A stretch of DNA of 64,000 nucleotides from Utricularia gibba (Eukaryota; Plantae; Magnoliophyta), in the NCBI GenBank assembly GCA_002189035.1, contig NEEC01000016.1, forward strand, positions 2,565,908 through 2,629,907. Direction: 5' to 3'. The notes beneath the pieces are model-generated. The model had not been told where the DNA came from, made no database searches, and saw only the letters and a program-made list of their open reading frames with translations. The translations under genes were made by a program, and so were the position numbers. The first letter of the stretch is position 1, and the number at the start of each line of letters is the position of its first letter. Positions 11,820-64,000 of the stretch are shown here, piece by piece.

Positions 11820-13273
11820 TGAGTTTTTCAAGGAAGATGGTTTACGCATAAACCATGCCCGTGTGGCCTTGTGGTGCTGCAGTGTATCAACACGGGCGTG
11901 GTTAGCGCATAAACCACGCTCGTGTGGCGTTGTCATGCTGTTGTGTGTGTCTACAGGCGTAAACCACGCCCCTATGGCCTTGTGGTGCTCTTGCGTATGC
12001 ACACAGGTCGCGCTCGAGCGCAAAGTCAGTTGCAGCCTGGCGGAAAAAATGATGCATTTCTTAACGCTGGGTTGTCATGAGCCGCCTAGATTTTTTTGAT
12101 GAAACACCTTCTAGTTTTGGCAGGTGGTGGGGCAGTCTCGACTTGGGCCATGGGTTCAGTCCGGCTAATGAGCCCAGTTTGGTCCGACTTGATGAAAATC
12201 GTGATGCTTTTATTGATGTTAGGATGTAACGAGAACCCCACACCGTTTTTCCAACAACATATTTTATATTTGAGGAGGAGCTCTCGGGGGGGCACCTGGA
12301 TCGGGCCGAAGGTAGTTCTGAACTTGGGCTCAAAGTATGTTGTAGCCCACCAAAAAAAGTGATGCATTTATTAACGTTGGGTTGTCACGAGCCGCGTACA
12401 TGGTTTTGAAAGGAACACCTTCTCATTTTGAGGCGGGTGCTCTCAAGAGGCACTTGGCCCGGGTCCCGGGTTCAGTCTGGCTCATGACCCCACTCGGGTC
12501 CGACTCGACGAAAATGATGATGCATTTGTTGAAATTAGGATATCACGTGCACCCCACATTTGTTGAGTGAGCATGGGGGAATGAGTATATCAATAGAAAG
12601 GCATTCATTTTTTGTGTTTCTGTTAACTATCATATCCAAGATTGAACCTTTGTTATTTTCAAACATGTGAAAAGATTAGGTTTCAAAGTGAACCTAAGAT
12701 GATTATCTGTTAACAAAGATTGAACCTTTGTTATTTTTATAAATCATATTTTTTCAAGCATACGAGAACATGCTAGATGCAACAATTACAAAAAAAAAAA
12801 AATATATTTTTATAAAAATATGATATTTTTTATACTCATATGATATATTTTTATAAAAATATAAATAATGTAAATAAGTTATTCATTAACCCATATGAAA
12901 AATATAAAAGTTTCTTAGTTTTTAATTTTATTAGCATTCGATCCTTATTTGTACTTCGAATAGAGTGTGTATTTTTATTTTAATTAGCATTCGAACCTTG
13001 GTAACGATTCGACTCGAACAGCGTACATTTTTTATTTTAATATTTTTATCCTCCTTCGGCAAGATTGGGATCCAGCGTATATTTTTGATTTTAATATTTT
13101 TATGAGCAATCGAAGCTTAGGAATGATTCAGCTCGAGTGTATATATATATTTATATATATGTTTTTTTTGAATTTGTATTAGCCTTCGATCCATACGAGC
13201 GATTTAGATCGAGTGCCATTCACAAGGGCACATGGGCATGGGTTGTGCGTAAACCACGCCCGTGTGGCCTTGT
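11820..13273 (-). repeat. old diverged relative of the 2.3-kb array unit (reverse orientation): GC motif x3, ~150-bp sub-repeats, AT tract, one fold-back arm
   Basis: Same motifs as the array on the opposite strand (AAACCACGCCCGTGTGGCCTTGT; GATGCATTT.TTAACG.TGGGTTGTCA; TTAGCATTCGATCC). Confidence 0.88.
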
Positions 13274-14477
13274 TGTAACGACGACCTGCACCCTATACGC
13301 TAAGGCCATTACTGACACCTAACACTCAGTATTGGTGTCCCAATCGTTATGGGGTGGGTTAGGAACGTGGTTGAGGGTGCATTCCTCCCTTGCCACACCG
13401 CCATTCCTGGCACCTAGCGATCCCCGGCAGCATCCCTAGCCGGATCCTTTCGCCAAGACTCACCAAACAGCACAAGGAGCGAAGTAGATATTTTATTAAG
13501 TCAAGACAATTCAAGGTTCCACACCAGGCGGCAAGCCTAGGCACACGGCGCCACAACACAAAGGAAGAACGAACACAACCAGCAAGGAAATAGAGCTAAG
13601 TCACGAAGAGAGAAGTAAGACAGCAAGTCTCGCCACACAGCCATCCACCACACATCCTAGTGATCACGCCTCACTCAACATCCACCTCCGCTGCACCCGC
13701 CTCGCCATCAGCCATGCCACCTACACAGGAAAGAGTAAGGGAAGTCAGTCCTATGCCACACGGCTCCCTCCCTAAGCCTAAACTACACATATTCACGAAG
13801 TTTCCCATCCGCACGATCCATCACTGCTGTTCGCACACGCTGCCCCCGCGAGGCATCTCCGTAACTTCTCGTATCGGCTCGCAGCCCATCATAGGCATCT
13901 CCGATGTTCTCGTAATCAATCCGAACACCTTTCCACACAGAATCCTACACGTTTGGCACCTCTCCCACTGAGCACAAGTGCTCAGTGTTGCCGCCATGAC
14001 CGTAGTTCGATGGCCTCGCTTATTGCTCGCATGGCCTCACGATCCGCGGCTTCGCCGCGTTGCCATTGGGGGTGCACTCCCCAATCCTGCCGTAGCTCAC
14101 AACCCCTCGATCACACAGCGAGGACTTTTAAGAACAAGACCATATCTCCACACACGAAGTTAGCTTCCACCAATCTGTCCCGCAGCGCAATTACACTATA
14201 AAGCCCTTACCTTTGTGCGTTTTTTGTCTTCCTCTTGGTGTGGCTGCCGTCCCTCTCAGCTGGTGTCCCTTCCAAGGGCTCTAGCCCTTCTACTTATACC
14301 CGTAATTCGTCCTATCGGGTCCATCCTAAGCCCGTCGGGTCTACCCGGAAGACACGCAAGTCTAAGGGTTGTTCACAAGTACCCTCCCTTGTTCACAAGT
14401 CTAAGCCCGTCGGGTCTACCCCTTACCATGACCGCATCTTTGTCTCTTTTCTGAGGATTTGGGTCGGGGGTGTTACA
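13274..14477. mobile_element. solo LTR family Y, copy Y1 (Tekay/Del-like termini)
   Basis: TGTAACGACG...GGGTCGGGGGTGTTACA, 6-bp terminal inverted repeat, flanked by TTGT/TTGT (apparent 4-bp TSD, or CTTGT with one base lost). Orientation and lineage not certain. Confidence 0.8.
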
Positions 14478-14592
14478 TTGTGGTGCGGGTTCATACGCAC
14501 ACAGGTGTGGTTAACGCATAAACCACGCTCGTGTGGCGTTGTCATGCTGTTGGGTGTGTCTGCCAGCGTAAACCACGCCCGTGTGGCCTTGT
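14478..14592 (-). repeat. GC-motif copies of the old repeat, resuming after Y1
   Basis: Collinear with uninterrupted 11875-11985. Confidence 0.85.
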
Positions 14593-15435
14593 TAACGACT
14601 GGCCTGCACCCTAGACGCTAAGGCCATTACCGACACCCAACACTCAGCATAGGTGTCCCAATCATTATGGGGTGGGTTAGGGACGCGTGTGAGGGTGCAT
14701 TTCCGTCGTCACCACACCTCCACTCCTTGCACTTGGTGATCCTTGGCGGCCTCTCTCGCCAGATCCTTTCGCCATGCCTCACCGAACTGCGCAAGTAAGG
14801 AAATAGAGATTTTATTAAGCCACGAGAATCAAGGTTCCACACTGGGCGGCAAGCCCAGGCGCACCCCGCCCCAACACGAAGGGAAACGAACACAACCAGC
14901 AAGGAAAGAAAACTAAGTCACGAAAAAGGAAAAATAAGGCAGCAAACCTCGCCATGCATCGAGCCATCACACAACCCAGCGATCACGCCTCACTCCACAT
15001 CCTCCTTTGCCGCAACCGCCTCGCGATTAGCCATGCCACCTACACAGGAAAGAGTAAGGAAAGTCAGTCCCATGACACTAGGCTCCCTCGGTAAGCCTAG
15101 GTTACACATATTTACGAAGTTTCTTGAAATATCGCAACGCTTGCGACACACTGCCCCCGCGAGGCATCTCTGTAGCCCCTCGTATAGGCATGCTGTCCAC
15201 TCAAAGCATTTCCGATGTTCTCGTAACCAGTCCCAGCACCAATCCACACAGTAACATACACGTTGACCTTTCGCACTGAGCACAAGTGCCTCAGTGTTGC
15301 CGCCATGACCGTAGTTCGATGGCCCCGCTTAGTGCTCGTGTGGCACTACCACCCACGGTTACACCGCATTGCCATTGGAGGTGCACTACCAAATCCCGCC
15401 GCAGTTCATCATACCCTGATCACACAGCGAGGTGC
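14593..15435. mobile_element. family Y LTR, copy Y2, truncated by CRM-like LTR
   Basis: Collinear with Y1 from (TG)TAACGAC to CACACAGCGAGG; visibly diverged from Y1. Confidence 0.85.
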
Positions 15436-15979
15436 TGATGTGACCCTCTAATGTATATAGATTAGCAACCCAAAGAACAAGAGGTGATTTTGAAGCCTAG
15501 AAAGGAACCCACCCAAGTCTACCCTCAAGAGAATCAATCTCTTGCAACCAGACTTTGAAAAGAAGGGAAATTTAGGAGCCACACTTCAGAAAGAGTTGGA
15601 ATTGGAAGTGATAATCCTAAGACACCACAAGCTCGAAGCTTGATAAGTCTAGAGTGTTCAAGCTCTCAAAGAAGAGGAGAATCCTCATAACATACATCAA
15701 ATGACTAAAGGTCCTGAAATAGAACATCTCTAGAGTATTTATACTTTAGAATTGGGCTCTAACATTATATAGCCCAAACTAAATGAAATAGAAAAGTCTA
15801 ACAAGCCCAATGCTTTGATTCCAATGGTATTGAGTAGAGCCTTAAGTGTATCTTCAACCATTTTTGTCTTGCTCCTAGTCATTGGTTCTAGTGGAATCAT
15901 CTTTTTTTCTAATGTGTTCACTTGGACAAACTCCTCATCATTCTTCAAATACACTTCATTATCTTCCTGGGGCTCATCA
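15436..15979 (-). mobile_element. CRM-like (centromeric chromovirus) LTR without matching TSD
   Basis: TGATG..CATCA termini; minus strand begins TGATGAGCCCC and encodes DEPQEDNE..PMTRSKTKMVEDTLKALL (CR-motif-like integrase tail inside the LTR); flanks GGTGC / AAGCA differ. Confidence 0.8.
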
Positions 15980-16379
15980 AAGCATGCGTAAGGAATACCT
16001 AAGCATAGATGTCATTCAACCTAGGAAGCATGATATGGGGCGGACTCAACAGATAAAAGCACAAGCATAGAAAATAAAACATACGAAAAGTTGTCCAAAT
16101 ACGGTAACGAAAGATAGTTCGTTTAATAGAGAAGAGCTCCTTCCCCACACTTAATTCTAAGGATGTCCTCATCATCAAGCATGGTGGAGGGTACCTTGTC
16201 ATCAAGCATGATGGCACTGCAAAGAGGTGACCAAGGTGTCCAGTTTGGACGACAATGTGGTGATCTGGTGCTGCAGATCTTGAAGAGCCAGCAGGAGTGT
16301 GCGTTTGTCCAGAGATGCAGGGGCAGCCGTTAGAGGAGTCACCATATGGTTCTACAATGGTGTGCGGCATCACGGTGGT

Positions 16380-17895
16380 CTTACTCTTCGTCCCAGCTTG
16401 GACGAAAACGGCACGGCCTCCAGCTTCCTTGAGGTAACTGCACTGAAAAAGATCAACTAAATCAAGGTATCACAAATGGGCGTCTACCTTAGGTGTGCTG
16501 GCAATGAGGTCCATATTAAGATGCATCGCGAGCTTAGTGATGAGGGATGCGAATGGAAGCACTCGTTCGCTACGCGATGCTACACGATTCATGTGCATAG
16601 CAATCTACCAGCCAAGGTTGATTAGGATCTTCTTCATCATGGCCCAGAGGAAGAACACTACCACCTTGGAGACCACACTGGTGCCTTGGCGAGTGGCAGA
16701 ATAGCATCCTCCGAGATACCTGTTCAAAACTAACAGCGCAGGAGCCCTCAAGTGATAGGCCTTGAGTTTGGAACTAAGAAAGGGTGGTTCACACACAGAC
16801 ATGGAACCATAATCGCAGCAGGCTTGCAAATAACGAGCAGAAGTAAGTTCAGTTTCAGACATCAAGCCAAGTGCAACATTAAAATCATTAACAGAGAGTT
16901 CAAAATCTTTCCCACCCAGCCGAAAGGAAATGAGGGGTTCAGCAATAGGGTTCCCTTCCACATCATTAAAAGCAAAAGTAGCATAGAACTCGAAAACTAA
17001 TTTTTGGGAAAACAGGAAGTTCAATTTCGGAAAGCCAACGCCATTCGGGTGAAAACTCAAACATACGGTTAATGTCATTTGTCAAATTCAGATGTGCTAA
17101 CGTAGGAGCATGTAGACGGAAGGCAAACAAAATACGGCGACTAGTTAAAGCATTGAAAAGGGCTTGGGATTTCTTGTTTGGAAACCTTACAGTGTTCCGG
17201 AGTTCGGTCTAGGCAGGAGACTCCAGTAAGCAGTCTTGCCAGAATTTTTGTCGCCCACGTTGTCCTTTGCCACGCTGCCTGCTTGTTTGGCCAGCGTTGA
17301 TGGCTTGCTCCCTGTCTTGGAATGTTAGTGGTGGTCCTTCGTTAGCGGCTCCATGCATTGCTGCAATCAAGAAATCCACTTCAGAATCAATATCATCATC
17401 CTCACCTTCCCCTTCCTCCTGAGGTGAGCGTCTGTGTTCAGCAGCTGGTGGACTAGCTTCCTCTTTCACTTCTGTGTCCCCATCTTCTTCCTCCAGGTCG
17501 TCCAGTCGGAAATCTTCATCGGAGCTGTCGGTATGATCCTTGGGTGCAACTGGGTCTTACTCCGGTGTCTCCTCTACAACAGGTTCTCGTGTGGCTTCTC
17601 TCTCCTGGGCTGCAGCGGGCATTTCCTGGTCTGCCGAAGAATCCGCGTCTTTCTATGGATGGTACAAAACAGGAGGGAGTTCAGCTAAAGGGACTTGTGA
17701 AAATAGTGGAGAAATCTCCCAGGATGAAGTTTTTGGTGGAGGCACAAACTGGCGTTTGTGAGGTCTGGGTGAGGGCGAAGCAGAATGCTGTCGGTTCCTC
17801 CGTGATGGACCTTCAGTGGCGGCCTTGCGTTGCCTAGCTGTGCTGGGTTTCCTAACAGGGGTACGAAGAGATGAAGCAGAGGATGTTCCCTTCAT
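16380..17895 (-). pseudogene. Athila env-like extra ORF remnant
   Basis: ORF pieces 17653-17895, 17209-17469, 16605-17078 (LVFEFYATF, ISFRLGGKDFELSVNDFNVALGL), downstream of INT. Confidence 0.7.
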
Positions 17896-17908
17896 GGCTA
17901 GTGGTTAC

Positions 17909-18497
17909 TGATGTGACCCTCTAATCTATAGAGATTAGCAACCCACAAAAAAGAGGTGATTTTGAAACTTAGAAGAGAACCCACCCAAGTCTACCCTCAA
18001 GAGAATAAATCTCTTGCAACCAGACTTCGAAACAAAGAAAATTAGGAGCCACACTTCAGAAAAGAGAGATTGATTGGAAGTGATAATCCTAGAACGCCAC
18101 AAGCTCAAAGCTTGATAACTTAAGAGTGTTCAAGCACTCAAAGGAGAGGGGAATCCTCACAAGATACATCCTGAATTAGTACATCTCTAGAGTATTTATA
18201 CTCTAGAATTGGGCTCTAACATTACATAGTCCAAACTAAATGAAATAGAAAAGTCTAACAAGCCCAATGCTCTAAGTTAAGTCCATCTTCAAGTAGTTGA
18301 GCTCTTTTGATGGGATGTCTTCAAGCCCATGTTTGATTCCAATGGTATTGAGTAGACCCTTAAGTGTATCTTCAACCATCTTTTTCTTGCTCCTAGTCAT
18401 TGGTCCTGGTGGAATCATCTTTCTTTCTAATTTGTTCACTTGAACAAACTCCTCATCATTCTTCAAATACACTTCATTATCTTCTTGGGGCTCATTA
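17909..18497 (-). mobile_element. CRM-like solo LTR (589 bp) with perfect TSD
   Basis: TGATG...CATTA termini, TSD GTTAC at 17904-17908 and 18498-18502; encodes IPPGPMTRSKKKMVEDTLKGLL on minus strand. Confidence 0.9.
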
Positions 18498-18862
18498 GTT
18501 ACGATGGGTCGCAAGGGTGAGGAAGAAGGTAAACTGGTAATCGGCAGAAGAGGGGAATGCCTTACGGAAAAGTGGGGAAAGTGATAGAAGTAGTGGTGTG
18601 AATGGGAAATGGGTAGTTATGGTGAGAGGAGGGTCCCAAGGAGGATAATCATGGGGGAAAGGAAAGCAAAATTTTAATGTCTTTCGGTAATGATGTGTGG
18701 GATAGTGTGTAATCCCAACAGAATCCTAGGGAACCTCCAACGTCCGACAAAACTAAAAAAGGAAAGAGAAAATTAACTCATTGGTTGCCTCCCGTGCAGC
18801 GCCAATTTAAAGTCGTTGGCCGACTTGGTATGCTACTGATAATCCTCAATTAAGAGCAAACA

Positions 18863-20058
18863 TCAAGCTGTTTGCGGCTGAAAGTTCTCATAATACGGTT
18901 TCAACCTATGGCCATTGACCTTGAAACATTTCCCTGTCTCATAAGAACGTATAACAACAGCACCATAAGGGAAAACATGTGAAACTTCATAAGGTCCTTG
19001 CCATTTAGATCTCAGTTTTCCAAGAAAAAATTTCAAAGTGGTATTATATAAAAGAACTTTCTGACCAACTCGAAATTTCTTCTCATGCAACTTACTGTCA
19101 TGAAAGTGTTTTACCTTCTCCTTGTAGATCATGTGATTGGAGTAGGCATTCAAGCGGATTTCCTCTAATTCGTTCAGATCAAGTATTCTCTTTTCTCCTG
19201 CTTGATCACTAATCATGTTGCATGCTTTGACGGCCCAGTACGCTTTGTGATAAATCTCCACTGGAAGGTGGCAAGACTTTCCATAGATCATGCAAAAGGG
19301 AGACATTCCAATGGGATTTTTGTATGCTGTGCGGTAGGCCCATAACGCATCATTCAGTCTGAGACTCTAGTCTCTTCTGGTTGGATTCACTGTTCGTTCC
19401 AGGATGTGTTTGATCTCTGGATTTGAGTTTTCAGCCTGTCCATTAGTCTAAGGATGCCTAGCTGTAGAAAGACGATGATGAACTCCAAATTTTGTTAGCA
19501 TAGCGCTTATGACATGGTTCACGAAGTGAGTACCTCGATCAGAAAAGAGAATCTTAGGATAACCGAACCTAGGGAAAATGTGAGAAGTCAAGAAATAGCT
19601 TACAGTCCTCGCGTCATCTTTCTCACATGCCCTGGCCTCGACCCACTTAGAAACGTAATCAACAGCAAGAAGGATATAAACCTTTCCCTTTAATGAAGGG
19701 AATGGTCCCATGAAGTTAATACCCCAAGCATCGAAAATTTCACACATCACGATGGGCTGAAGTGGTATTTGGTAATTGGGGCATGCCTTGCAATCAAGGT
19801 ATGCATCTCAGAAAAGAGTAGGCCAATAGAAGCCAGCTTCCAAGACCTTGTTAACTGTGATCTTGGGACCAAAATGACCCCCACAAGACAGTTCATGACA
19901 ATGAGTAAGAATTTAGGGTTTGATCAGGCCCAATCTTCCACAGGTATGGGTCATCCCAAATGTAGTGCATACTGTCACTTCGCAACTTCTCCTATTGATG
20001 AGGCTGGAAGTCTTACGGGAAATGGCATGTTACAAGAAAATTCACAATGTCTGCGTAC
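18863..20058 (-). pseudogene. Athila-like integrase remnant
   Basis: [51 protein letters not shown]; frameshifts. Confidence 0.92.
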
Positions 20059-20252
20059 TGTTGGAGATCAATCTCAATCCAAAGTTTGAAGGTGATTGGA
20101 AGCACTAATCTTGTGTCATAATGTTATATTTCAGATAAAAGGTGTTGAGTTCGAGCATGGAAGTGTTGGATTCGAGTTGTTGGGCTTTTTGTGTGTTTTC
20201 AATAATTGTGGCCCACTGTTGGGTAACCTAGGTATTGGGTATATATAAACCC
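20059..20252 (+). repeat. truncated copia LTR (5' portion)
   Basis: TGTTGGAGATC start, ends just after TATATATAAACCC where a second LTR starts. Confidence 0.88.
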
Positions 20253-22440
20253 TGTTGGAGATCAGCCTCAATCCAAAGTTTGAAGGTGATTGGAAGCACT
20301 AATCTTGTGTCATAATGTTATATTTCAGATTAAAAAGGTGTTGAGTTCGAGCATGGAAGTGTTGGATTCGAGTTGTTGGGCTTTTTGTGTGTTTTCAATA
20401 ATTGTGGCCCACTTGGGTATATATAAACCCTACTAGGAATGCGTGAATAAGGGTTTTGGTCATTCTTATTGTTCATGAGTCGTTTTTCATCCAAGGTGAT
20501 CTCAGAAGTATTACCTTTTTGTTACTTCTCAAGACTCTCTTTTTCTTGCATCAACATGGTATCAGAGCAGTAAGGTTCTCAAACCTGTGCTCGTTTCAGT
20601 ATTTTATTTACCGTTCAGCGTTTTTTACTTGGTGGATTACAAAGTATCAACCCAAAGCTTTTGAAGCGGTGGCTATGATGGCATCTGGTAGAGGACCTCC
20701 AATATTTGATGGTTCAGGGTATGGAAGCTGGGTCAAAAATATGCGCAACTACCTGCGGGTCAGAAAGATTTGGGATGTTGTCGAAAGGGAGATTCCGGCG
20801 ATTACAATAACAAGCAAATACACATCAGAACAGCAAGAGCCACCTGAATATCTTCAACAGAGAAAAGATGAAGTAATGGATGCCTTGTATCAAGCCATCT
20901 CTGAACATCTATTTGATAATATTGCAGAGTGTCAATCAGCAAAAGAAATATGGGATACTCTCAAATCCCATTATGAAGGTGATGCCAAACTGAGAGAAAT
21001 ATTATGCAAAAACAAGTTGGAGGACTTTGAGAGGAACAAAATGTTAGACAATGAAACCATACAAGTCTATTATGAACGTACTGCGAAGCTTGTGAAGGAG
21101 ATTCGAGGATTGGGGAAACAACTTGAGGATCAAAAGGTGATTAGCAAGGCAATCATGAGCCTACCTGCAAGATTCGAGCCAAAGTTATGTGCACTTGAGA
21201 CAGAAAGAAGAATCCTTGACATTATTGAAGGAAAGCTCCATCAGTTATATCCTGAATATCCTGTTACACCAGAGCCAACATTTAGAGAGTTCATGATTGA
21301 GTTGCAATCTACAAAAAAGAGATTGGAGCTAAGAGATGGTTATGAAGTTGAGAAAACTTATGGTGAAGCTGCTCTCCTCACCAAAATGCAGAATATGAAT
21401 ATAAACTCAGGTGCAATTAACAATGTCAAGGATGTCAAATCAACAGCCATCAAACAATCACCAACGTCAATCCCCACATCAACGATGGGCAATCAGAAGT
21501 GCAGGCATTGTGACAAATCCAACCATAAGAGTGAAGATTGTTGGACTTTAAGCACAAATGCTTGCAAGCATTGTAACAAACAGAATCACAGGAGTGAGTT
21601 TTGTTGGTGGAAGCCTGATGCTTTGTGCACGAAATGCAATCAAAGAGGCCATCTTGACAAGGTATGTGGAATGTCAAATCCAATAAAAGTTGAGCATAAC
21701 AAGAAGGCTACTTCCAGGGAAGAGAAATCACATGCATCCTTTACCTACTTTGAAGATGAGCCAGAAATATCTTTTGAAGATCCTTTTGAGTATGAGTGTG
21801 CTCTAATGACAGTAGCCTCAGATGCTAAAGGCTGGTACTTGGACTCTGGCGCCTCCTATCATGTATGTTGTGATACAAGGTCATTTCTCAAGCTTGAAAG
21901 GATTGGGAAGGAGGTAAGCACGTGCACTGGTGAAAATATTGGCATTGTGGGCAAAGGAAGCATTTTACTCTTGCTAAAAGAAGGAATTGTTCAAGTTGGT
22001 GATGTTTATTATTCACCAAACCTCAAACAGAACCTGTTGAGCTTTGGCCAATTGAGCAGGCAAGGTTTTGACATTGAGCTGATGAAAGATGCTGGTGGTA
22101 TAACCACTACAGTTAAGGTTGCTGATCCAAAAACGAAGATTGAATTCCATGCTGTGTTGACCACCTACAACCTCTACCAAATCATGGTCAGTGATCATAA
22201 AAGTTGTATTTTCTCACTTCAAGATCAAAGCAGCCTTTGGCACAAATGTTTTGGGCACTATAATTTCAACAATCTGAAAATATTGCAGAAGAATAAGGAT
22301 GTACTGGAATTGAAAGACATCAAGTTTGCTAATGCCATACGTGAAGTGTGTCATCAAGGTAAACAGTGTAGAAAGCCCTATTATTCCAGTGATTCAGTAG
22401 CAAAGGAGAAATTAGAGCTTGTGCATACAGATGTTTGTGG
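20253..22440 (+). mobile_element. copia copy A: 5' LTR (20253-20556), PBS, gag-PR-GAG-pre-integrase, truncated
   Basis: LTR TG..CA, PBS TGGTATCAGAGC, ORF from ATG 20675 with gag, CCHC knuckles, WYLDSGASYH protease; stops abruptly at HTDVCG. Confidence 0.95.
20557..20568 (+). promoter_or_regulatory. primer-binding site (initiator tRNA-Met)
   Basis: TGGTATCAGAGC directly after LTR end CA; mirror copy at 24724-24735 on minus strand. Confidence 0.93.
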
Positions 22441-25037
22441 TGTTGATGCAAGAAAAAGAGTCTTGGGAAGTAACAAAAAGGTAATGCTTCTGACATTCAA
22501 CTTGGAGAAACTTATTGTAGGAGCCTTGTTTCTTTTGCTTCTTGACATATCAAGGATTGTTCTGTCAGATATACCATTCTGTTGTGGAGAATATGGTACG
22601 GTGAATTGATGCATGATTCCCTCATTTTCACAGAACATTCTCATGCTATTATTGTAGAATTCGCCTCCATTGTCTGATCTAATCATCTTCAAAGAGCATC
22701 CACTCTGATTCTCAACCATCACTTTGAATTTTCGAAAGATATGAGGAACTTCTAACTTGCTTTTAAGAAAGTAAACCCAACAATAACGTGAATAATCATC
22801 AATGAATGTAACAAAGTATCTACTCCCCCTAATGAACATTCCTTAAATGGTCCACAAACATCTGTATGCACAAGCTCTAATTTCTCCTTTGCTACTGAAT
22901 CACTGGAATAATAGGGCTTTCTACACTGTTTACCTTGATGACACACTTCACGTATGGCATTAGCAAACTTGATGTCTTTCAATTCCAGTACATCCTTATT
23001 CTTCTGCAATATTTTCAGATTGTTGAAATTATAGTGCCCAAAACATTTGTGCCAAAGGCTGCTTTGATCTTGAAGTGAGAAAATACAACTTTTATGATCA
23101 CTGACCATGATTTGGTAGAGGTTGTAGGTGGTCAACACAGCATGGAATTCAATCTTCGTTTTTGGATCAGCAACCTTAACTGTAGTGGTTATACCACCAG
23201 CATCTTTCATCAGCTCAATGTCAAAACCTTGCCTGCTCAATTGGCCAAAGCTCAACAGGTTCTGTTTGAGGTTTGGTGAATAATAAACATCACCAACTTG
23301 AACAATTCCTTCTTTTAGCAAGAGTAAAATGCTTCCTTTGCCCACAATGCCAATATTTTCACCAGTGCACGTGCTTACCTCCTTCCCAATCCTTTCAAGC
23401 TTGAGAAATGACCTTGTATCACAACATACATGATAGGAGGCGCCAGAGTCCAAGTACCAGCCTTTAGCATCTGAGGCTACTGTCATTAGAGCACACTCAT
23501 ACTCAAAAGGATCTTCAAAAGATATTTCTGGCTCATCTTCAAAGTAGGTAAAGGATGCATGTGATTTCTCTTCCCTGGAAGTAGCCTTCTTGTTATGCTC
23601 AACTTTTATTGGATTTGACATTCCACATACCTTGTCAAGATGGCCTCTTTGATTGCATTTCGTGCACAAAGCATCAGGCTTCCACCAACAAAACTCACTC
23701 CTGTGATTCTGTTTGTTACAATGCTTGCAAGCATTTGTGCTTAAAGTCCAACAATCTTCACTCTTATGGTTGGATTTGTCACAATGCCTGCACTTCTGAT
23801 TGCCCATCGTTGATGTGGGGATTGACGTTGGTGATTGTTTGATGGCTGTTGATTTGACATCCTTGACATTGTTAATTGCACCTGAGTTTATATTCATATT
23901 CTGCATTTTGGTGAGGAGAGCAGCTTCACCATAAGTTTTCTCAACTTCATAACCATCTCTTAGCTCCAATCTCTTTTTTGTAGATTGCAACTCAATCATG
24001 AACTCTCTAAATGTTGGCTCTGGTGTAACAGGATATTCAGGATATAACTGATGGAGCTTTCCTTCAATAATGTCAAGGATTCTTCTTTCTGTCTCAAGTG
24101 CACATAACTTTGGCTCGAATCTTGCAGGTAGGCTCATGATTGCCTTGCTAATCACCTTTTGATCCTCAAGTTGTTTCCCCAATCCTCGAATCTCCTTCAC
24201 AAGCTTCGCAGTACGTTCATAATAGACTTGTATGGTTTCATTGTCTAACATTTTGTTCCTCTCAAAGTCCTCCAACTTGTTTTTGCATAATATTTCTCTC
24301 AGTTTGGCATCACCTTCATAATGGGATTTGAGAGTATCCCATATTTCTTTTGCTGATTGACACTCTGCAATATTATCAAATAGATGTTCAGAGATGGCTT
24401 GATACAAGGCATCCATTACTTCATCTTTTCTCTGTTGAAGATATTCAGGTGGCTCTTGCTGTTCTGATGTGTATTTGCTTGTTATTGTAATCGCCGGAAT
24501 CTCCCTTTCGACAACATCCCAAATCTTTCTGACCCGCAGGTAGTTGCGCATATTTTTGACCCAGCTTCCATACCCTGAACCATCAAATATTGGAGGTCCT
24601 CTACCAGATGCCATCATAGCCACCGCTTCAAAAGCTTTGGGTTGATACTTTGTAATCCACCAAGTAAAAAACGCTGAACGGTAAATAAAATACTGAAACG
24701 AGCACAGGTTTGAGAACCTTACTGCTCTGATACCATGTTGATGCAAGAAAAAGAGAGTCTTGAGAAGTAACAAAAAGGTAATACTTCTGAGATCACCTTG
24801 GATGAAAAACGACTCATGAACAATAAGAATGACCAAAACCCTTATTCACGCATTCCTAGTAGGGTTTATATATACCCAAGTGGGCCACAATTATTGAAAA
24901 CACACAAAAAGCCCAACAACTCGAATCCAACACTTCCATGCTCGAACTCAACACTTTTTATCTGAAATATAACATTATGACACAAGATTAGTGCTTCCAA
25001 TCACCTTCAAACTTTGGATTGAGGCTGATCTCCAACA
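22441..25037 (-). mobile_element. copia copy B: internally deleted element (5' LTR 24736-25037, PBS, gag, PR, part of INT, last ~55 bp of 3' LTR)
   Basis: Reverse complement of copy A continuing into INT, then two deletions (after DMSR; after KLN) joining to TCAGAAGCATTACC..GCATCAACA; RT, RH and PPT absent. Confidence 0.93.
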
Positions 25038-25334
25038 TAGAGATGTTCTATTTCAGGACTTTTAGTCATTTTTCATGTATGTGGTGAGGATTCTCCTCCT
25101 CTTTGAGTGCTTGTACCCTCTTAACTTATCAAGCTTTGAGCTTGTGGCATTCTAGGATTATCACTTCCAATCCCTTCTCTTTTCTGAAGTGTGGCTCCTA
25201 ATTTTCTTAGTTTCGAAGTCTGGTTGCATGAGATTCATTCTCTTGAGGGTAGACTTGGGTAGGTTAATTTCTAAGCTTCAGAATCATCGCCTGTTTGTGG
25301 GTTGCTAATCTCAATAGATTAGAGGGTCACATCA
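25038..25334 (+). mobile_element. 3' half of a CRM-like LTR
   Basis: Reverse complement of 15436-15733; ends GGGTCACATCA inside the Athila RT start; other half replaced by copia B. Confidence 0.85.
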
Positions 25335-28200
25335 CATCCTCCAACCATTCTGCACTCTTGTGGGAATAAGTTCCCTTTGTTCATTGTTCATCACTGTAAT
25401 ACCAGTTTTCTTTGGGACAACCTGCATAGGGCTAACCCACTCACTTTCAGATATAGGATAAATGATACCTGCGGATAACAGCTTCAAAATCTCTTTCTTG
25501 ACTCCTTCCACCATTGGGGGGTTCAGTCTCCTCTGTGGCTATCGAAATGGCTTCGTCCCATCCTCTAGGTAAATCCTGTGAGTGTAAATAGAAGGGCTGA
25601 TTCCCTTGATGTCAGAAGTCCAACCAATTGCTTGTTTATGCTCTTGAAGCACAACCTTAAGCTTCTCCTCCTGTTTTAAGGTTTGTAAACTAGAAACAAT
25701 AACGGGTAGGGTCTCATCATCACCAAGAAACAAATATTTCAAATGTTCGGGCAAAGTCTTTAACTCTAATGATGGTGCTCGAATAACAGAAGGCACTAGC
25801 AGCTCGCTAGGTGTTTCCAAGCTAAGAAAAGAAACATCTTGCACATGAGGTTCGTTGGGTGGATCATCTGAATGATTAAAGACTTCAAGTTCAGCACGAG
25901 GAAAGTCTTCAGATTGAGAAATTTCCGTGTCTAGATCAGATTCGGGCACTTGTTCATGAATCATTGCATAGGGATATGTGTCAGTTTCGCATGCGGAGAT
26001 TGCATGTATCTCATTGATCTGTTCAGGATGCTTCATGGCTTTGTCAATACTGAATTCCATCACCTGTACATCGAACTGAAGACTGATGGTGCCTGCTTGA
26101 ACTGATCTTTGTTTTTGCAGTAGCCATGAATGGTTGTCCCAAAATAATGGACTCTGAAACCTTAGGGTTATCACTTTCCATGAGAATAACCAAAAAGTCA
26201 GTTGGAAAAACTAAATCCTTAACATGAACAAAAACATCTTCAATTCTACCATATGGTGTAACTTGTGATCTATCTGCTAATTGACATACAACATTCGTCG
26301 GTTCAAGTTTGCCTAACTTAGATGCAAGAGACAAATAAAGAGATCTAGGCATAACGTTAACCGAAGCACCAAGATCACACATAGCTACTGAAATCTTTGT
26401 ATTTCCAATGGTAACGGGAATTGAAAACATACCGGGATCCTTACACTTACACGGCATTCTCCTTTGAATGATGGCTGAAATGTTTTCAGTCAAAGTGATT
26501 ACTTCTTTTTCCACCTTTGCTTTCTTCTTCGGGTTACATAGGTCCTTCAACAACTTGGCATACTTGAGGACCTGTTCAATCATATCAAGAAGAGGAATAG
26601 AAACATTAACCTTCTTCATCATTTCCATAAAAGTTTTCAGTCCTTTCTTGTCCTTGTTCCTTCTTCGAAGCCTCATCAGGAAGGGTGGCGGTATGACCAA
26701 TGGCTTGGTCTGAGGAATTTCGCTTGCCTCCTTCTCTTGAACATCCTCAGGTGGCTTCGGAATATCATTGTTCTGCACTGGTGAGTCATCTAGGTCGTCA
26801 CCAATGATTTCTTCATCAACATCAAAATCACTGTCTATGACCTCTAGCTCCTTTTCTTCGGACCTATCTACCTTGTTTGTGAACCATGGGTAAGGGTCTG
26901 GTAGGTCAGTTCCACTTCTCAGTGAGATGGCATTTTGTGTTCTGGATTCTGCACTGGTTGTGATGGCAATCCTCCCTTTGTTTCCAGACGATTCATTGCT
27001 TGTGCAAGCTGAGTAATCTGGCCTTGAATACTTGTGATTTGGCCCTTCATGTCTTTCTGCTCAGCATGCATCTTGGTGGTGCTTTCAGCAACAGATTTGA
27101 CCATGGCCTCTAAACTGTGATTCGATTGGTATGGGACCATATGTTGTTCTGGAGGTCCGGTTATCTGCAATGGTGGCCCAGTGATAGTCTTCTGAGGAAT
27201 ACCAGGTGGGTTCCCTAATGATGGTGCTTGACCAGGGGGTGTTGGCTGTCTCCAGCGAAAACCAGGATGGTCTCTTCGAGGCATTTGATAATTTCCATAG
27301 TTGTACGTCCCACCTTGGTTTTGATACCAGGCATTAATTTCTTCCATTGGCATTTCAGGAGCTCTTGATCCAGTGTCAAAATGAGATGGCATAGAACTTG
27401 AGGTTGCTTGATATCCTTCCTTTTGTTGAAGCAAGGCTTGAAGACCAAACTTCAACGTGTCGCTCATTTCTGCAAGTTGAGCCAATACTTCTGAGTTGTC
27501 CGCTCCATAGACTGCTTTTGCTATTCCAATGCTTCCACCAGGTGGTCTATAGGAGTTGTCATAACGATTGGCTTTGGAATAGGAATTAGCAGCCATTTAT
27601 TCAATGAGTCCGCAGGCATTAGCACTGTGACGGTTCGCTAATAATGATCCATTACAAGCGGCATCCATCTGTCCTCGGATCATAGGAGTCAATCCTTCAT
27701 AGAAATGCTGCAAGATCTGGCCTTCAGTGAGTCCATGCTGAGGGTAGGAGTTGCAGATTTGGTTGAAACGATCATAATACTCCTGCAAGTTTTCTCCTTT
27801 ACTCTACATCATGGTAGTGAAGGCTCTCCTTCCGGCTAAAGCTCTTCCTAAGGGTGCATAGCGATCCAAGAATTTTTGGACCATCTGCTCCCATGTGGCG
27901 ATAGATGAAGGTGGAAGTCCATAAAGCCACTCCAAAGCCCGTTCGGTAAGACTGAAGGGAAATAATCTAAGCTTGACTTGATTCTCCGTAGTGCCCTTGG
28001 GGCGCATGGATGCACAAGCCGTGTGCAACTCATGTAGATGACGATTGGGGTCGTCATTTTCCTCAATGACCCAATGAGTCCAGATACGAGATCACTACCT
28101 GTCCATTGATCCTGTGGTACGGCCACAGACAAAATGTTGTCTTCTTCCTGCCAAAAGGGCATGAGTTGGTCCTTTCCACCTTGCTCCTCTCCAAAACCCG
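25335..28200 (-). pseudogene. Athila-like gag, protease and RT N-terminus
   Basis: KLRLFPFSL..ALEWL, EYYDRFNQI gag; AMCDLGASVN protease; KKEILKLLSAGIIYPISESEWVSP RT start; stops and frameshifts. Confidence 0.92.
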
Positions 28201-28226
28201 CGGGTAGTGATCAGCTTTAATGAAGA

Positions 28227-28735
28227 TGTTATGGGTGAAATCAGTATTCGGTGAGAGGCCGATTTTAGGTGATAGGCACGGTCGGGAATGCCACACTTAG
28301 TCACCTTCTTCACAGCTAGTACGATTAAAATAAGAGTGCACAAGGATTTTTTTACATGGAAACCGCCGGAGAGCGGAAAAACCACGGAGCTACCGGAGCT
28401 CGCCGGAAAAGAGTTTCACTAGGTGGATGTCGCGAAAAAGGAGAATACAACTTGAAGAAATCTTTTTTGAGTCCAAGCTCTTTCTTGTCATAATTCCGTC
28501 TATTTATAGGAGAGCTCACTCTGACCGAATTCTAGTGTTTGCAAACATCGGTTGCTTTCTGCTCCTGCTATACGATCTCGCTTTTCAGGTATCGGCCGGT
28601 TTTCAGGCTATGTCATATGGCCATACCTGTTAGATTTCTGACAGATGTCGATATGTCGTCTGGCGTTATCCCCTCGGGATCTCTTTTGGCAGCCTTTTGG
28701 GAACTGATTACCCTTGGCCGATTTTTCCCTTATCA
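28227..28735 (-). mobile_element. Tat-like solo LTR (509 bp) with perfect TSD
   Basis: Minus strand TGATAAGGG...CCCATAACA, TSD GAAGA at 28222-28226 and 28736-28740; homologous to LTRs at 7766 and 39022. Confidence 0.9.
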
Positions 28736-29108
28736 GAAGATAAGCTAACGAAACATAGATCTGGTGGTATTCCAACCCAGAATCGAAAGTTTCTAGCCAC
28801 GAACGGCCAAACAAACTAAAAGAAACGAAACAAAGTTCTAGAGAGAAGCTAGATGAAAAATCCTCAAGAGTGAGAAACAAAAGTCTAAACTAAACTGAAG
28901 TAAAAACTAAGCTTGTCTGAGCTTTTATATCCCTGTGATTCTACTGAACTTGGGATGACTTGCAAGCAACGTCTGACACTGGTACGCTAATGATGCTACC
29001 TGTCAGAGACTCCCGTGTTTCACACGTCAAGGCTCATCATTAGGCGTCTGTAGTCTTCTGGAAATCAAGGGAATGTCAGCTCGGGAAACTACGGAGCCAG
29101 AGAGGTGG

Positions 29109-29880
29109 AGCGCCCGCTCCCCTCCCCCCCAAAACTAGAAGGTGTTCCATGGAAAACCATTTAGGTGGCTCGTGACAACCCAAAGTTAATAAATGCATCA
29201 CTTTTTTTGCCGGGCTACAATGACTTTGGGCTCGAGCCTGGTACGACCTCTGGGAAGATTCGAGTGCCCCCGAGAGCGTCTGCACTAGCATAAAGCGTGT
29301 TGTTGAAAAAATCGTGTTGGGTGCACGTGACATCCTAATTTCAACAAATGTGTCACGTTTTTCGCCGAGTGGGACCAGACAAGGCTCATCAGCCAAACCG
29401 AACCCGGGGCCCAAGCCAAGGGCCCCTCGAGAGTGCCCCCCGCAAAACTAGATGGTGTTCCATCAAAAAAAATTAGGCGGCTCATGATAACCCAAAGTTA
29501 AGAAATGCATCAATTTTTTCGCTGGGCTAAAACTGACTTTGGGCTCATGCCTGGTGCAACCCCCAGCCCTTGCGCATATGCAGCAGCACCACGAGGCCAC
29601 ATGGGCTTGGTTTATGCCCGCGTGCTAGAGCAGCAGGCACAAGGCCATACGGTCGTGGAACAAAGCAAACAATCAAAAGCCATCGGGTTTAACCCGTTCG
29701 GGTTGAACAGAAAAATAACCCCATGGGTCATGCAAACTGTAATACCCAGAATTTCATCGGGTTGGGTCCGAACCTGAATGGATCCAACCCAGGCCCATCT
29801 CTAATCATAATCATATGATATATGTTTATTAAATTATAAATAATTGAAATATATTATTTATTAAACCGTAGGATAACTAT
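29109..29880 (+). repeat. diverged partial copy of the array unit (sub-repeats, GC motif, AACCCG-rich block)
   Basis: Collinear with 40176-41020 apart from substitutions and a ~65-bp gap. Confidence 0.9.
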
Positions 29881-29906
29881 ATTAGTTGAAATATATTATT
29901 TATATT

Positions 29907-31238
29907 TTTTGAGAGTCTTGGCGAAGGGATCTGGCGAGGGGTGCCCCAGGGATCGCCAGGTGCAAGGAATGGCGGTGTGGCGAAGTAGGAATGCACCCTT
30001 AACCACGTTCCTAACCCACCCCCATGATGATTGGGACACCAGCGCGGAGAGTTAGGTGTCGCGACCTTCACCCTAGACGCTAAGGCCATTACCTACACCT
30101 AACTCTCCGCGCTAGTGACCCAATCATCATGGGGGTGGGTTAAGAACGTGGTTAACGGTGCATTCCTCCTTCGCCACACCGCCATTCTCTGCACCTGGCG
30201 ATCCCTGGCGGCACCCCTTGCCAGATCCCTTCGCCAAGACTCTCAAAACAGTACAAGTAACGAAACAGTGATCTTATTAAGCCACAAGGATCCAAGTTCC
30301 ACACAAGGCAGCAAGCCTAGGCGCACGGCGCCACAACGTAAGGAAAAACGAGCACAACCAGCAAGGAAATAACACTATCTCACAAAAGGGAAAATAAGGC
30401 AGCAAGCCTCGCCACTCAGCCATCAACCCACATTCTATCGATCACGCCTCACTCCACATCCGCCTCTGCTGCACCCGCCTCGCCATCAGCCACGCCACCT
30501 ACATAAGAAAGAGTAAGGGAAGTCAGTCCTATATCGCACGGCTCCCTCCCTAGGCCTAGACTACTCATATTCACGATGTTTCCCCTCCACACGAAGCATC
30601 ACTTCTGCTCACACACGCTGCCCCTACGAGGCATCTCCGTAACTTCTCGTATCAGCTCGATGCCCATCCTAGGCATCTCTGATGTTCTCGTAATCGATCC
30701 GAACACCTTCCCATACGGAATCCCACACGTTTGGCCCCTCTCCCACTGAGCACAAGTGCTCAGTGTTGCCGCCATGACCGTAGTTCGATGGCCCCGCTTA
30801 TTGCTCGCATGGCCTCACGATCCGCGGCTTCGCCGCGTTGACATTGGGGTGCACTCCCCAATCCCGCCGTAGCTCACAACCCCTTGATCACACAGCGAGG
30901 ACTTTCAAGAAACCAGAACCATGTCTCCACACACGAAGTTAGCTTCCACCAATCTGTCCCGTAGGACAATTCAACCATAAAGCCCTTACCTTTGCGCGAT
31001 TTCTGTCCTCCTCCCGCGGCTGCCGTCTCTCTTAGTTGGTTCTCCTCTACCCAGGGTTCTAGTTCCTCTACTAATACTCGCAGCTGCCCTTTATCGGGTC
31101 TACCCTAAGTCCGTCGGGCCTACCCGAACCCCTAAGGGCTGTTTCGCTAGCACCCTCACCTTGTTAAGGTCAGTCTCCTGACCCTCGCTGTGCCCACATC
31201 CAAGCTGCTGTCCTGAGGCCTGGGTCGGGGGTGTTACA
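29907..31238. mobile_element. family Y LTR, copy Y3, left terminus replaced by an inverted duplication
   Basis: 30060-31238 collinear with Y1, ending GGGTCGGGGGTGTTACA; 29907-30059 is the reverse complement of 30095-30248. Confidence 0.85.
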
Positions 31239-31620
31239 ACAAGGCCACACGGGCGTGGTTTACGCACAACCCATGCCCGTGTGCCCTTGCAATGTAAACA
31301 GGATCCAAATTGGTCCTAAGGATCGACCGTTAATACAAATTTAAAATAAATCATATCCACTCGATTCGAATCATATCTAAAGATCAAAAGCTAATAAAAA
31401 TATTAAAACAAAAAATATACGCTCGATCCGAATCATATCTTAGAATCGAATGCAAATAGAAATATTAAAATAAAAAATATACACTCGATTGGAATCATAA
31501 CTAACGATCGAATGATAATTAAAATTATTAAAATAAAAATGCACACTCCATCCAAAGTATAACTAAAGATCGAATGCTAATAAAATTAAAAAAGTAAGAA
31601 ACCTTCACATGTATTATATG
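31239..31620 (+). repeat. central GC hairpin motif plus right fold-back arm of the array unit, diverged
   Basis: ACAAGGCCACACGGGCGTGG...TTCACATGTA, collinear with 41525-41900. Confidence 0.88.
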
Positions 31621-33114
31621 GTTTACTAAATTCTCCATTTCTTCATTTTTTTAGGTTTTTGTCATTGTACTTAACTAATTACTTCTACTACTCAATGACG
31701 TAAAATAAGTGTACTACGTAAACTAATATTAGATATTTAAAATTAGAGATATTTTATGTAATTACCTATACTACATTTGTATAATATTGTACATCATAAC
31801 ACTCAAATCATTATAGTTTTTCATTTTCTATGTCTTTGACCAGTAGTCTTATCCTCAAAACAATTACAAATAAAAAATATTTAAGTTTGAAATTCTTATT
31901 AAGAAGTTCCATTGTGTTTAAAAAAAGGTCTTTGTGTAAGGTTTACAAGCTAATATCTTGTCTTGGTTGTTAATATGTTTTGAGGAATAATGGTTTGTCC
32001 ATAATATAAAATTCCAATATAATAAAATACTATCAATAACCAAAAGGTTTCACTAAAACAAATAACTACAAGGCATATGCACCAAGAAATCTTATCATTT
32101 GCTAATTTTTCATTGCAATAAGCAATCAATCCACTCTTTGGCTAAATAGTTTTATATAATTTCAAAATATATTTTTATAATTTTTCAGTGCTGTTTTTAT
32201 CTACTTAATACCTCAATCTTCTGACTTTTTTAGGCAGAATTAAGGTTGCATAATATTACTACATATGATGACGCGAATGATGATGATGATTCACACATTA
32301 CTTGAAGTAGTATACTGATCTCCTATCATGTTATCATTGGTGTTGAGATTTTTAAATGTTTTAATTTAATATGAAGTACTAATTGCATTCTAGTGATTCA
32401 TGTGCAAACAGGGCAAATACCTCAACTTTTTTATTTCCTTTACAATTTACCCTACTTTTATAAATATTTTGCTAATCATCAAAAAAATTAGATTTTTTTT
32501 ATATTTTACCTCAACAATATATTTTGAATTTGGAATGTAACATTTCAATTTTAATAGGTTTTAATATTTACGATTTAGTTTTTTTATTTTATTTTGGATT
32601 TAAGTTTTAAAATTTAATGATTTCTTTTGATACATGAATATTATAAATACTCACTTGTCTTATATAATAATTTCTTTTGATATACAATATATATTAATAA
32701 TAAATTTTTTATATAATCTAATTTTGATATTCCATCGTATCATATGTTTGATATTTATACATGAAATTAATTTCATTTTTTTATCTTTAATATAATATTG
32801 AAATTGTTTTAACAAAAACAATGTATCACATTTTATTATTCTTATTATTAGATTTTGAAATACTTTAAATTACAAACATGTTATATATAAGGTAAAACGC
32901 TAATCAAACACTTCTGACAAGGGTAAAACGACGAAGGAAGTGATTCACAAACAATAAATGTTTTTGAATAATAAGGGTTCAACCTGGTGTGAGAACATGA
33001 GCATCGTCGTGTGAGAACCTGAGCATGGAGAGAGAGGCGAAGGACAAGTCATTAATCATCTACTTTCAAGTGCAAGTCACCAAAAAACAAAAAAAAAAAC
33101 TGTAGATGACGAGT

Positions 33115-35787: not shown

Positions 35788-35914
35788 CGACGACGGCCCG
35801 AGAAGGCAGTGGCTTACTGGAGGCTGCGGTGTCCTGTCAGCGAATGATGGAGCAGCGAAGATCCGGGAAGTCTCAACTCGCGAAGAAGAACGCCGCACAC
35901 CTCTGCTCCCTCCA

Positions 35915-38900: not shown

Positions 38901-39464
38901 GAAGCGTCGTGACGTTTGAGGTACCCAGAATGAGCGGGAAAAAACGTGGCGTGCCAAGGGTAAATTTGATCCCCCGATTTACCTCGAGAAGGGATAATAT
39001 TGACGAATCAGAGGGGCTGAATGATAGGGGATAAATCGGTCAAGGGTAATCGGTTCCTAAAAGGCTGCCAAAAGAGATCCTAAGGGGATAACGCTAGGTG
39101 ACAAATTATCTTTTGTCAAAAATCTGACAAGTATGGCCATATGACAAAATCTGAAAAGCGGCCAAATTACGGCATAACGGGTGGTCGATATCTGAAAAGC
39201 GAGATCCTATAGTAGGTGCAGTAGGCAACCGATATTTGCATGTGTCAGGGTTCAATCAGGATAAGCTCTCCTATAAATAGACGGAATTATGACGAAAAGC
39301 AAGTTGGACAAAAAAAGATTTCATCAATTTGTATTCTCCTCATCACGACCTCCATCTAGTGAAGCTCTTCTCCGGCGAGCTCTGGCAGCTCCGTAGTTTT
39401 TCCGCCTTCCGACGGTTTCCACGTAAAAAATCCTTGCTCACTCTTATTCTAATGTAATCGGCGG
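35915..39464 (+). mobile_element. Tat-like gypsy 3' fragment (INT, antisense-ORF remnant, PPT, truncated 3' LTR)
   Basis: DDWTTPY linker, LYEGECGSH, WGVDIMGPF, VYHPQSNG, WEGPYRI integrase with frameshifts (36079-37208); coiled-coil antisense remnants 38040-38610; PPT AGAGGGGCT 39010-39018; LTR from 39022 cut off by the array. Start is 35915-35980. Confidence 0.9.
39022..39464 (+). repeat. Tat-like 3' LTR lacking its last ~90 bp
   Basis: TGATAGGGGATAAATCGG start; collinear with solo LTR 28227-28735 until ~39456. Confidence 0.85.
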
Positions 39465-63400: not shown

Positions 63401-64000
63401 GCTCAACAAATGTGGGGTGCACGTGACATCCCAATTTCAACAAATGCATCATGATTTCGTCGAGTGGCCCATGAGCCCGTCCGAACCCGGGGCCCGGGCC
63501 AAGGGCCCTCGAGAGCGCCCGCCTCAATACGAGGAGGTGTTTCCTTCAAAAACCATATACGCGTCTCGTCACAACCCAACGTTAATAAATGCATCACTTT
63601 TTTTGGCGCGCTACTGCTGACTTTGGGCCTGAGTTCGGCACGACCTCCGGCTCGATCAGGGTGCCCCCGAGAGCTCCTCCTTAAGTATAAAGTGTGTTGT
63701 TGAAAAAAACCGTGTGCGGTTCTCGTGACATCCTAACTCAACAAATGCATCACGATTTTCGTCGAGTCGGACGGGACCGGGCTCCCGGGGCCCGGACGAG
63801 GCGCAGCGCCCGCTCCCCTCCCCCCCAAAACTAGAAGGTGTTCCATGGAAAACCATTTAGGCGGCTCGTGACAACCCAAAGTTAATAAATGCATCACTTT
63901 CTTTGCCGGGCTACAATGACTTTACGCTCGAGCCTGGTACGACGTATGGGAAGATTCGAGTGCCCCCGAGAGCGTCTCCACAAGTATAAAGCGTGTTGTT
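39465..64000. repeat. tandem array (macrosatellite) of a ~2.33-kb composite unit, 10 full units plus a partial, runs off the window
   Basis: Marker AGAAAGCTCATCACG at 39531, 41991, 44296, 46626, 48958, 51531, 53864, 56187, 58514, 60840, 63165; periods 2460, 2305, 2330, 2332, 2573, 2333, 2323, 2327, 2326, 2325 bp. Confidence 0.99.
39522..39773 (-). pseudogene. PIF/Harbinger transposase C-terminal fragment (one per array unit)
   Basis: Minus strand reads ER..ILETRWAILRSASYYLVQTQSHIILA / LHNFV*MNMGYDPLEAQV / EFITAVETSPGWCAWRDELSTM, matching the remembered plant PIF transposase tail (RWAILR..YP..TQ..II.ACC.LHNFIR..DP.E..W..WRD.LA..M); two frameshifts and one stop. Confidence 0.8.

Follow-up and report, generated by a model that had tools for sequence, protein, structure and literature searches.

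A candidate site-preferring long terminal repeat family at the GC palindrome of a macrosatellite in Utricularia gibba

The stretch of Utricularia gibba DNA analysed here (64,000 nucleotides, contig NEEC01000016.1 of assembly GCA_002189035.1, positions 2,565,908 to 2,629,907 of the forward strand; hereafter the window) carries a young array of 2.33-kb macrosatellite units, a relic unit (Ua) and an edge unit (Ub) of the same satellite, and three copies (Y1, Y2 and Y3) of a 1204-bp repeat designated Y. The repeat is non-coding, has a GC content of 54% and ends in TGTAAC...GTTACA. Judging from this end structure and from the target site duplication (TSD) around Y1, Y is probably a long terminal repeat (LTR), belonging to a retrotransposon family of low to moderate copy number. 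All three copies are joined to the satellite at the same base of a GC-rich palindrome, in both orientations, and this pattern is real and more than chance. A profile search of the window revealed no Y DNA beyond these three copies and one local inverted fragment, and the copies are all solo or truncated LTRs.

The junctions could be read at base resolution. An exact 20-mer, CCACGCCCGTGTGGCCTTGT, lies at 13254-13273 (+), 14573-14592 (+) and 31239-31258 (-), abutting Y in each case, and is joined to the 5' end of the element in Y1 and Y2 and to the 3' end in Y3. The bases following the 20-mer are TGTAACGACG in Y1, TAACGAC in Y2, where the first TG is missing, and TGTAACACCCCC in the minus-strand reading of Y3. 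The shared phosphodiester is the one between CACC and ACAA, i.e. between TTGT and GGTG, with a stagger of 4 bp, and it is used in either orientation; the flank of Y3 opens with ACAA-GGCC, which is the same 4-bp stagger reversed. Both junctions are readable in Y1 only, while Y2 and Y3 keep one each, and every readable junction falls at this one base (three of three copies). When Y1 and one TTGT were excised in silico, the sequence of the empty paralogous block was obtained, and within the two blocks positions 11890-11983 are 90% identical to 14499-14592. A first-pass annotation of the same DNA had claimed that three Y copies sit at one nucleotide of the GC motif, that Y1 and Y2 occupy motif copies 1 and 3 of a block with an empty version at 11845-11990, copy 2 (GGCGTTGTCATG) being unoccupied, that the TSD of Y1 is a 4-bp TTGT, and that a 13-bp perfect stem stands next to the site; each of these points was confirmed in the sequence, the stem being one that folds well.

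Four exact copies of the 20-mer exist in the window, three of which are occupied, and some 46 looser copies of the motif are empty. A 27-mer, GCGTAAACCACGCCCGTGTGGCCTTGT, is common to the three occupied sites, and CC-N4-GG is the only symmetry around the cut. The site lies at the foot of a stem of 13-19 bp, and the cut takes in three paired bases at the end of the extended stem and one more base. At the Y2 site a good stem partner is missing upstream, and the downstream side has been lost. Targeting predicts GGCCTTGT and ACAAGGCC as the words next to Y termini. The junctions were also compared with read contigs, which are 100-500 bp long and give neither copy number nor locations. Contigs from runs of three different studies agree with the reference at 13273 and 13279, flanking the 5' junction of Y1, and empty sites are traversed by many contigs. 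In two runs, position 73 of Y is covered by different contigs, seven to eight per run, and many of these are 5-20% unlike Y1, which again says nothing of the number or the whereabouts of the copies.

The palindrome itself belongs to the architecture of the satellite. Each array unit is laid out as an AT-rich fold-back in which a left and a right arm flank a central GC cluster, and the GC clusters, approximately 200 bp per 2.3-kb unit, are built of 58-bp motifs. Tandem motifs give rise to a 13-bp perfect stem (CACACGGGCGTGG and CCACGCCCGTGTG) with a 12-nt loop, lengthened by CAAGG/CCTTG in the motif copy beside the right arm; the folding predicted for it is strong (-26.8 to -28.6 kcal/mol, z of -5 to -6.7). 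The GC palindrome by the right arm (13222-13273, 31239-31290 and 41527-41580) is 92-96% identical across the relic, edge and young array units, compared to only 67-69% for the adjoining AT-rich arm (Fisher p = 8e-6). From these identities the palindrome looks constrained or homogenised, and its conservation would fit a bound factor or a constrained sequence, which is no proof that a factor is bound. The Y target in the central cluster is retained in array units 1 and 2 only; units 3-9, as far as their central clusters were read, are without the two central motifs, and the cluster there consists of GTGTGGCATGGCATTGTAATG (46164-46215 and later units). No Rfam family, rRNA included, reached threshold anywhere in the window, and the satellite thus shows no sign of an origin in ribosomal DNA (rDNA).

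The copies differ considerably in their state of preservation (Table 1). Y1 has the features of a solo LTR, with TG...CA ends in a terminal inverted repeat of 6 bp and a TSD that restores the empty site, and the TATA box lies approximately 280 bp from the 3' end. The part of Y2 beyond the first 850 bp was not found in the window. The 3' end of Y3 is identical to that of Y1; taken as a whole, the two copies show only 86% similarity. On its 5' side, Y3 bears a break-repair scar (29881-30061) that comprises a filler of 26-30 bp repeating nearby unit sequence, a 154-bp stretch copied from Y3 in inverted orientation, and the loss of 505 bp from the satellite unit. An ATG-started open reading frame (ORF) of 58 amino acids (MAATLSTCAQWER...) has the same length in Y1 (13821-13997, -) and Y3 (30599-30775, -), and its counterpart in Y2 has the same start and 64 amino acids; it may be a chance product of GC-rich DNA. 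A protein search with a 103-amino-acid ORF of Y, aimed at finding other copies via called genes, gave no match, a scan of metagenome contigs with the 3' terminus of Y gave three chance matches, none of them similar to the window, and a literature search on the LTR end words returned nothing relevant.

Table 1. Positions of the Y copies, their junctions and the satellite features of the window
Feature	Position	Strand or orientation	Description
Relic unit Ua	11845-14592	minus orientation	arm ~75% identical to array
Empty paralogous three-copy GC block	11845..11990	+	motif copies 1 and 3 = GGCCTTGTGGTG
Y1 flank, GC palindrome of Ua	13222..13273	-	terminates in the 20-mer CCACGCCCGTGTGGCCTTGT
Y1 TSD, left copy	13270..13273	+	TTGT, direct read; empty site = GGCCTTGTGGTG
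Y1	13274..14477	+	complete solo LTR, 1204 bp; TGTAAC...GTTACA; TATAAA at position 924
Y1 TSD, right copy	14478..14481	+	TTGT
Rest of occupied block	14482..14592	+	remainder of motif copy 1, empty copy 2, left half of copy 3 to the Y2 junction
Y2	14593..15432	+	first 850 bp of Y; terminal TG missing; interrupted by another LTR element at ~15436
Unit Ub	29092-31629	plus orientation	~90% identical to array; edge unit of the array
Left part of Ub	29092..29880	+	between here and Y3, unit positions equivalent to 41023-41527 deleted
Inverted piece of Y positions 40-194	29907..30060	-	94% identical to Y3; scar of fold-back repair where the 5' junction of Y3 was lost
Y3	30062..31238	+	Y positions 9-1204; first 8 bp gone; 3' end intact, GGGGGTGTTACA
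Y3 flank	31239..31629	+	ACAA (reverse of TTGT), then GC palindrome and AT-rich right arm of Ub; 90% identical to array units
Young 2.33-kb macrosatellite array	39465..64000	+	units 97-98% identical; source of the target motif
Empty central GC palindrome cluster, array unit 1	41420..41580	+	counterpart of the Y1/Y3 site = 41527-41546
Sole unoccupied exact 20-mer in the window	43919..43938	-	array unit 2

The ages of the copies and of their flanks were compared by relative-rate tests. Over 827 shared sites, 35 private changes were counted in Y1, 112 in Y2 and 62 in Y3, and the difference between Y1 and Y2 (p = 2e-10) persisted when CpG sites were left out. Since sister copies would be expected to carry equal numbers of private changes, Y1 and Y2, which are 115 bp apart, are not sister duplicates. 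In the flank, over 368 sites, the private changes numbered 58 in Ua, 12 in Ub and 20 in the array, a ranking that reverses the one of the elements (Fisher p = 6e-11 and 0.004 against the 35 and 62 changes of Y1 and Y3). An old flank thus holds the young Y1 and the reverse applies at Y3, which is the opposite of what joint descent of element and flank predicts. The flanks of Y1 and Y3 cluster with the right-arm type of the unit with 100/100 support, and their motif orientation is concordant. A comparison of the Y phylogeny with that of the flanks had been proposed as a check in the first-pass annotation, and the branch lengths of the two are indeed incongruent.

The explanation we favour, with a probability of roughly 55%, is that the insertions were repeatedly made by an integrase at one fixed 4-bp stagger, the Y family strongly preferring one position of the palindrome. 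The different ages of the copies speak for at least two separate insertions at one phosphodiester, and probably for three. An integrase is indicated by Y1, since both of its ends are complete and it is framed by a regular 4-bp duplication. A two-fold symmetric integrase complex would be placed at CC-TTGT-GG, at the foot of the stem, either directly or via a protein bound to the conserved motif, and the free orientation of the copies could be explained by the proposed symmetry of the complex. Because of the stem partner missing upstream at the Y2 site and of the 27-mer common to the sites, we favour read-out of the sequence, or tethering, over recognition of DNA structure alone. A more far-reaching version, that Y is truly sequence-specific and has read a non-ribosomal macrosatellite motif of about 20 bp with a fixed 4-bp stagger repeatedly over millions of years, is put forward only tentatively, as we hold it to be rather less probable than its opposite. 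If it applied, the satellite would be a dedicated landing pad and the motif would be bound by a factor guiding the integrase.

Several observations weigh against the favoured explanation. The sample consists of three copies in a single 64-kb window, and two junctions are available for Y1 alone. No full-length element with two LTRs, a primer-binding site, a polypurine tract and gag-pol, integrase included, was found for Y within the window, and the identity of Y as an LTR would accordingly hang on its termini and the TSD. Motifs already bearing Y could also have been shifted by gene conversion between units of the satellite, in which case there would have been fewer true integrations in the same orientation. 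Moreover, one 345-letter contig (run X3) matches the 3' end of Y1 (14299-14477) at approximately 97%, with 5 mismatches and an 18-base gap, and the match ends exactly at the last LTR base, 14477, after which 101 unlike letters follow. The contig thus comes from a further young copy of Y, followed by other sequence downstream, and it may represent either an insertion elsewhere or the 5' LTR of a complete element. Finally, the window was chosen from a very large scan, and it is not impossible that two events coincided in the small GC part of an AT-rich unit.

The last two of these points also belong to the rival that survives best, which we consider unlikely but deserving of serious attention, namely that there is no true site specificity and that a preference for GC-rich or palindromic islands in AT-rich heterochromatin, two chance insertions and local duplication or gene conversion together produced the pattern. 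The GC clusters take up a small share of the unit and so leave a reduced effective target, a weak preference for palindromes is seen in plant LTR elements (PMC6911290), and for the tomato element TRRT segmental duplication was chosen over targeting by the authors, who saw copies outside rDNA (PMC2679016). The junctions nevertheless agree to the base in three of three cases, and do not just share an island. Y1 and Y2 also fail the test for sister duplicates, and the filling of three of the four exact 20-mers, with no Y copy elsewhere in the 64 kb, speaks against this rival as well.

A single ancestral insertion, spread by unequal crossing-over and satellite amplification, with a later inversion producing the orientation of Y3, is disfavoured and appears very improbable. 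Such a model has been proposed for tomato TRRT1 (PMC2679016), and the region is certainly prone to rearrangement, as illustrated by the fold-back at Y3, a 4.8-kb copia palindrome with 99.9% identical arms and inverted satellite units. However, in every recombination modelled by hand (crossovers between LTRs, between unit arms and between hairpin stems, and fold-back duplication) the flank stays with the same LTR end, and the junction of Y3 therefore requires either an integration of its own or a flip in place. The latter would need exact breaks at both ends of Y, with the 6-bp inverted repeat as the sole guide. In addition, the branch lengths of Y and flank are reversed with respect to each other, and the empty sites of the array, whose units are closest to Ub, are clean, precise excision being foreign to LTR elements. 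The claim in the first-pass annotation that the opposite terminus of Y3 calls for at least two independent events is thus supported, as none of the modelled recombinations or fold-backs derives the Y3 junction from one of the Y1 type.

Also very improbable, in our view, is a mechanism driven by structure or breakage, in which cruciform extrusion or a break at the foot of the palindrome captures complementary DNA of Y whatever the sequence and perhaps with no integrase involved. A pathway independent of integrase is known for Tf1 (PMC11042837), and the position at the foot of a strongly folding stem and the repair scars on the 5' side of Y3 speak for such a capture. The Tf1 pathway uses homology to the reverse-transcription primers, so flanks specific to one end would be expected, but here the same flank is found at both ends. 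The complete ends and regular TSD of Y1 are, on the contrary, the mark of an integrase, and the site of Y2 offers no good upstream partner for a stem. That Y is instead a DNA transposon of the non-autonomous cut-and-paste kind, its ends being TG..CA and its TSD 4 bp, deserves hardly any credence. Such an element could re-insert either way round, and none of the Y copies in the window is linked to the internal part of a retroelement. On the other side, the terminal inverted repeat is just 6 bp, the 1.2-kb length, the position of the TATA box and the TG..CA ends fit an LTR, and we know of no plant DNA transposon superfamily with this combination of ends and TSD.

Some other arrangements of the same sequences were tried and rejected. 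Y1 and Y3 are not the two LTRs of one 18-kb element at a palindrome centre, as Y1 is bounded on the right by a flank and TSD of its own, similarity between the two is only 86% and their flanks would yield no direct TSD; the pairing of Y2 with Y3 was rejected on the same grounds. Between Y2 and Y3 there are only unrelated elements, namely a small LTR element, the copia palindrome and minus-strand gypsy ORFs. The GC motif is likewise neither the internal region of a tiny LTR element nor part of LTR-internal-LTR arrays, because the empty sites read through with one TTGT. Homology between Y and the motif was discarded as a cause of the pattern, the longest word common to the two being 10 bases.

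The surroundings of the satellite units are rich in other transposons. A 7.8-kb block of other transposon DNA (31630-39455), with an integrase ORF at 36300-37208, separates Ub from the array at unit position ~41922, so other elements evidently enter the satellite at other places. The small LTR element that interrupts Y2 (15436-18495) has LTRs of approximately 545-590 bp that are 86-94% alike, and a third, inverted copy of its LTR (25038-25341) adjoins the copia palindrome. At its start, 15436, contig depth is very high and many different upstream sequences are present in all four runs, as would be expected of a high-copy element with varied flanks. The copia palindrome itself (20253-25037) is the 5' half of a copia element as an inverted duplication, with 2188-bp arms and a 411-bp spacer, and may either be a genuine fold-back or have arisen in assembly.

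Few LTR retrotransposons target their insertions to the base, and the plant cases in the literature searched are Galadriel-clade elements in 18S rDNA, where targeting versus duplication is disputed even so. Were a second case in plants to have a different target outside genes, rDNA could no longer be regarded as a condition of the trait. Such a case would, moreover, provide a natural system for studying how a plant integrase reaches one DNA word, which bears on tools for safe-harbour insertion. The pattern also connects a possible bound factor with a palindrome conserved within a satellite that evolves fast. Outside plants, Ty3 of yeast and those insect elements of the gypsy group that have fixed 4-bp targets insert with a precision of one or two bases, several of them with 4-bp TSDs; Ty3 is targeted via a tether, and some of the insect elements read sequence. 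Unlike Y, these elements live in other hosts and are directed to start sites of RNA polymerase III or to short TA- or CG-rich words, and to our knowledge none of them aims at a satellite palindrome.

Within plants, the symmetric context around the TSD that the integrase would read in the case of Y, CC-N4-GG, resembles what is seen for Tos17 of rice and for the weak palindromic consensus of plant LTR elements, but the latter are statistical preferences over thousands of sites and not for one base of a 20-mer (PMC6911290). The first-pass annotation set the 4-bp TSD against the usual 5 bp, but 4 bp is the length in 11.6% of plant LTR elements and the one seen most often in Galadriel (PMC6911290), a clade named as an rDNA-associated lineage in a 2024 review (PMC10946416).

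The closest parallels come from this clade. TRRT of tomato, with its 4-bp TSD, occupies a single 18S site in seven copies, of which one is reversed and one is a solo LTR (PMC2679016), and thus resembles Y in its single site in a tandem unit, in the length of its TSD and in these two kinds of copies; its locus, like that of Y, sits where a satellite is evolving. The TRRT authors preferred one insertion followed by segmental duplication and inversion to targeting, and found copies elsewhere too (PMC2679016), whereas the relative-rate and flank tests argue against duplication for Y. Beon1 of beet, a Galadriel-clade chromovirus, occupies nucleotide 736 of the 18S rDNA in either orientation and across Beta species (PMC3605345) and is, like Y, a plant LTR element at one nucleotide position of a tandem repeat in both orientations; its TSD is conserved and its family is low in copy number, as is probably the case for Y. 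It differs in having a 5-bp TSD, instead of 4 bp, and full-length copies with a chromodomain integrase, whereas Y is known here from its LTRs alone. The reading of Y as targeted, put forward in the first-pass annotation, is therefore supported in part, as far as repeated separate insertions at one base are concerned, but its unusualness was overstated in view of the plant precedent of Beon1 and TRRT (PMC3605345, PMC2679016). With these elements Y shares insertion at the same nucleotide in three of three copies, with independence supported, and the use of both orientations with a stagger consistent with the same TSD; what is new is the target, which in Beon1 and TRRT is the 18S rRNA gene and in Y is the palindrome of a non-ribosomal macrosatellite.

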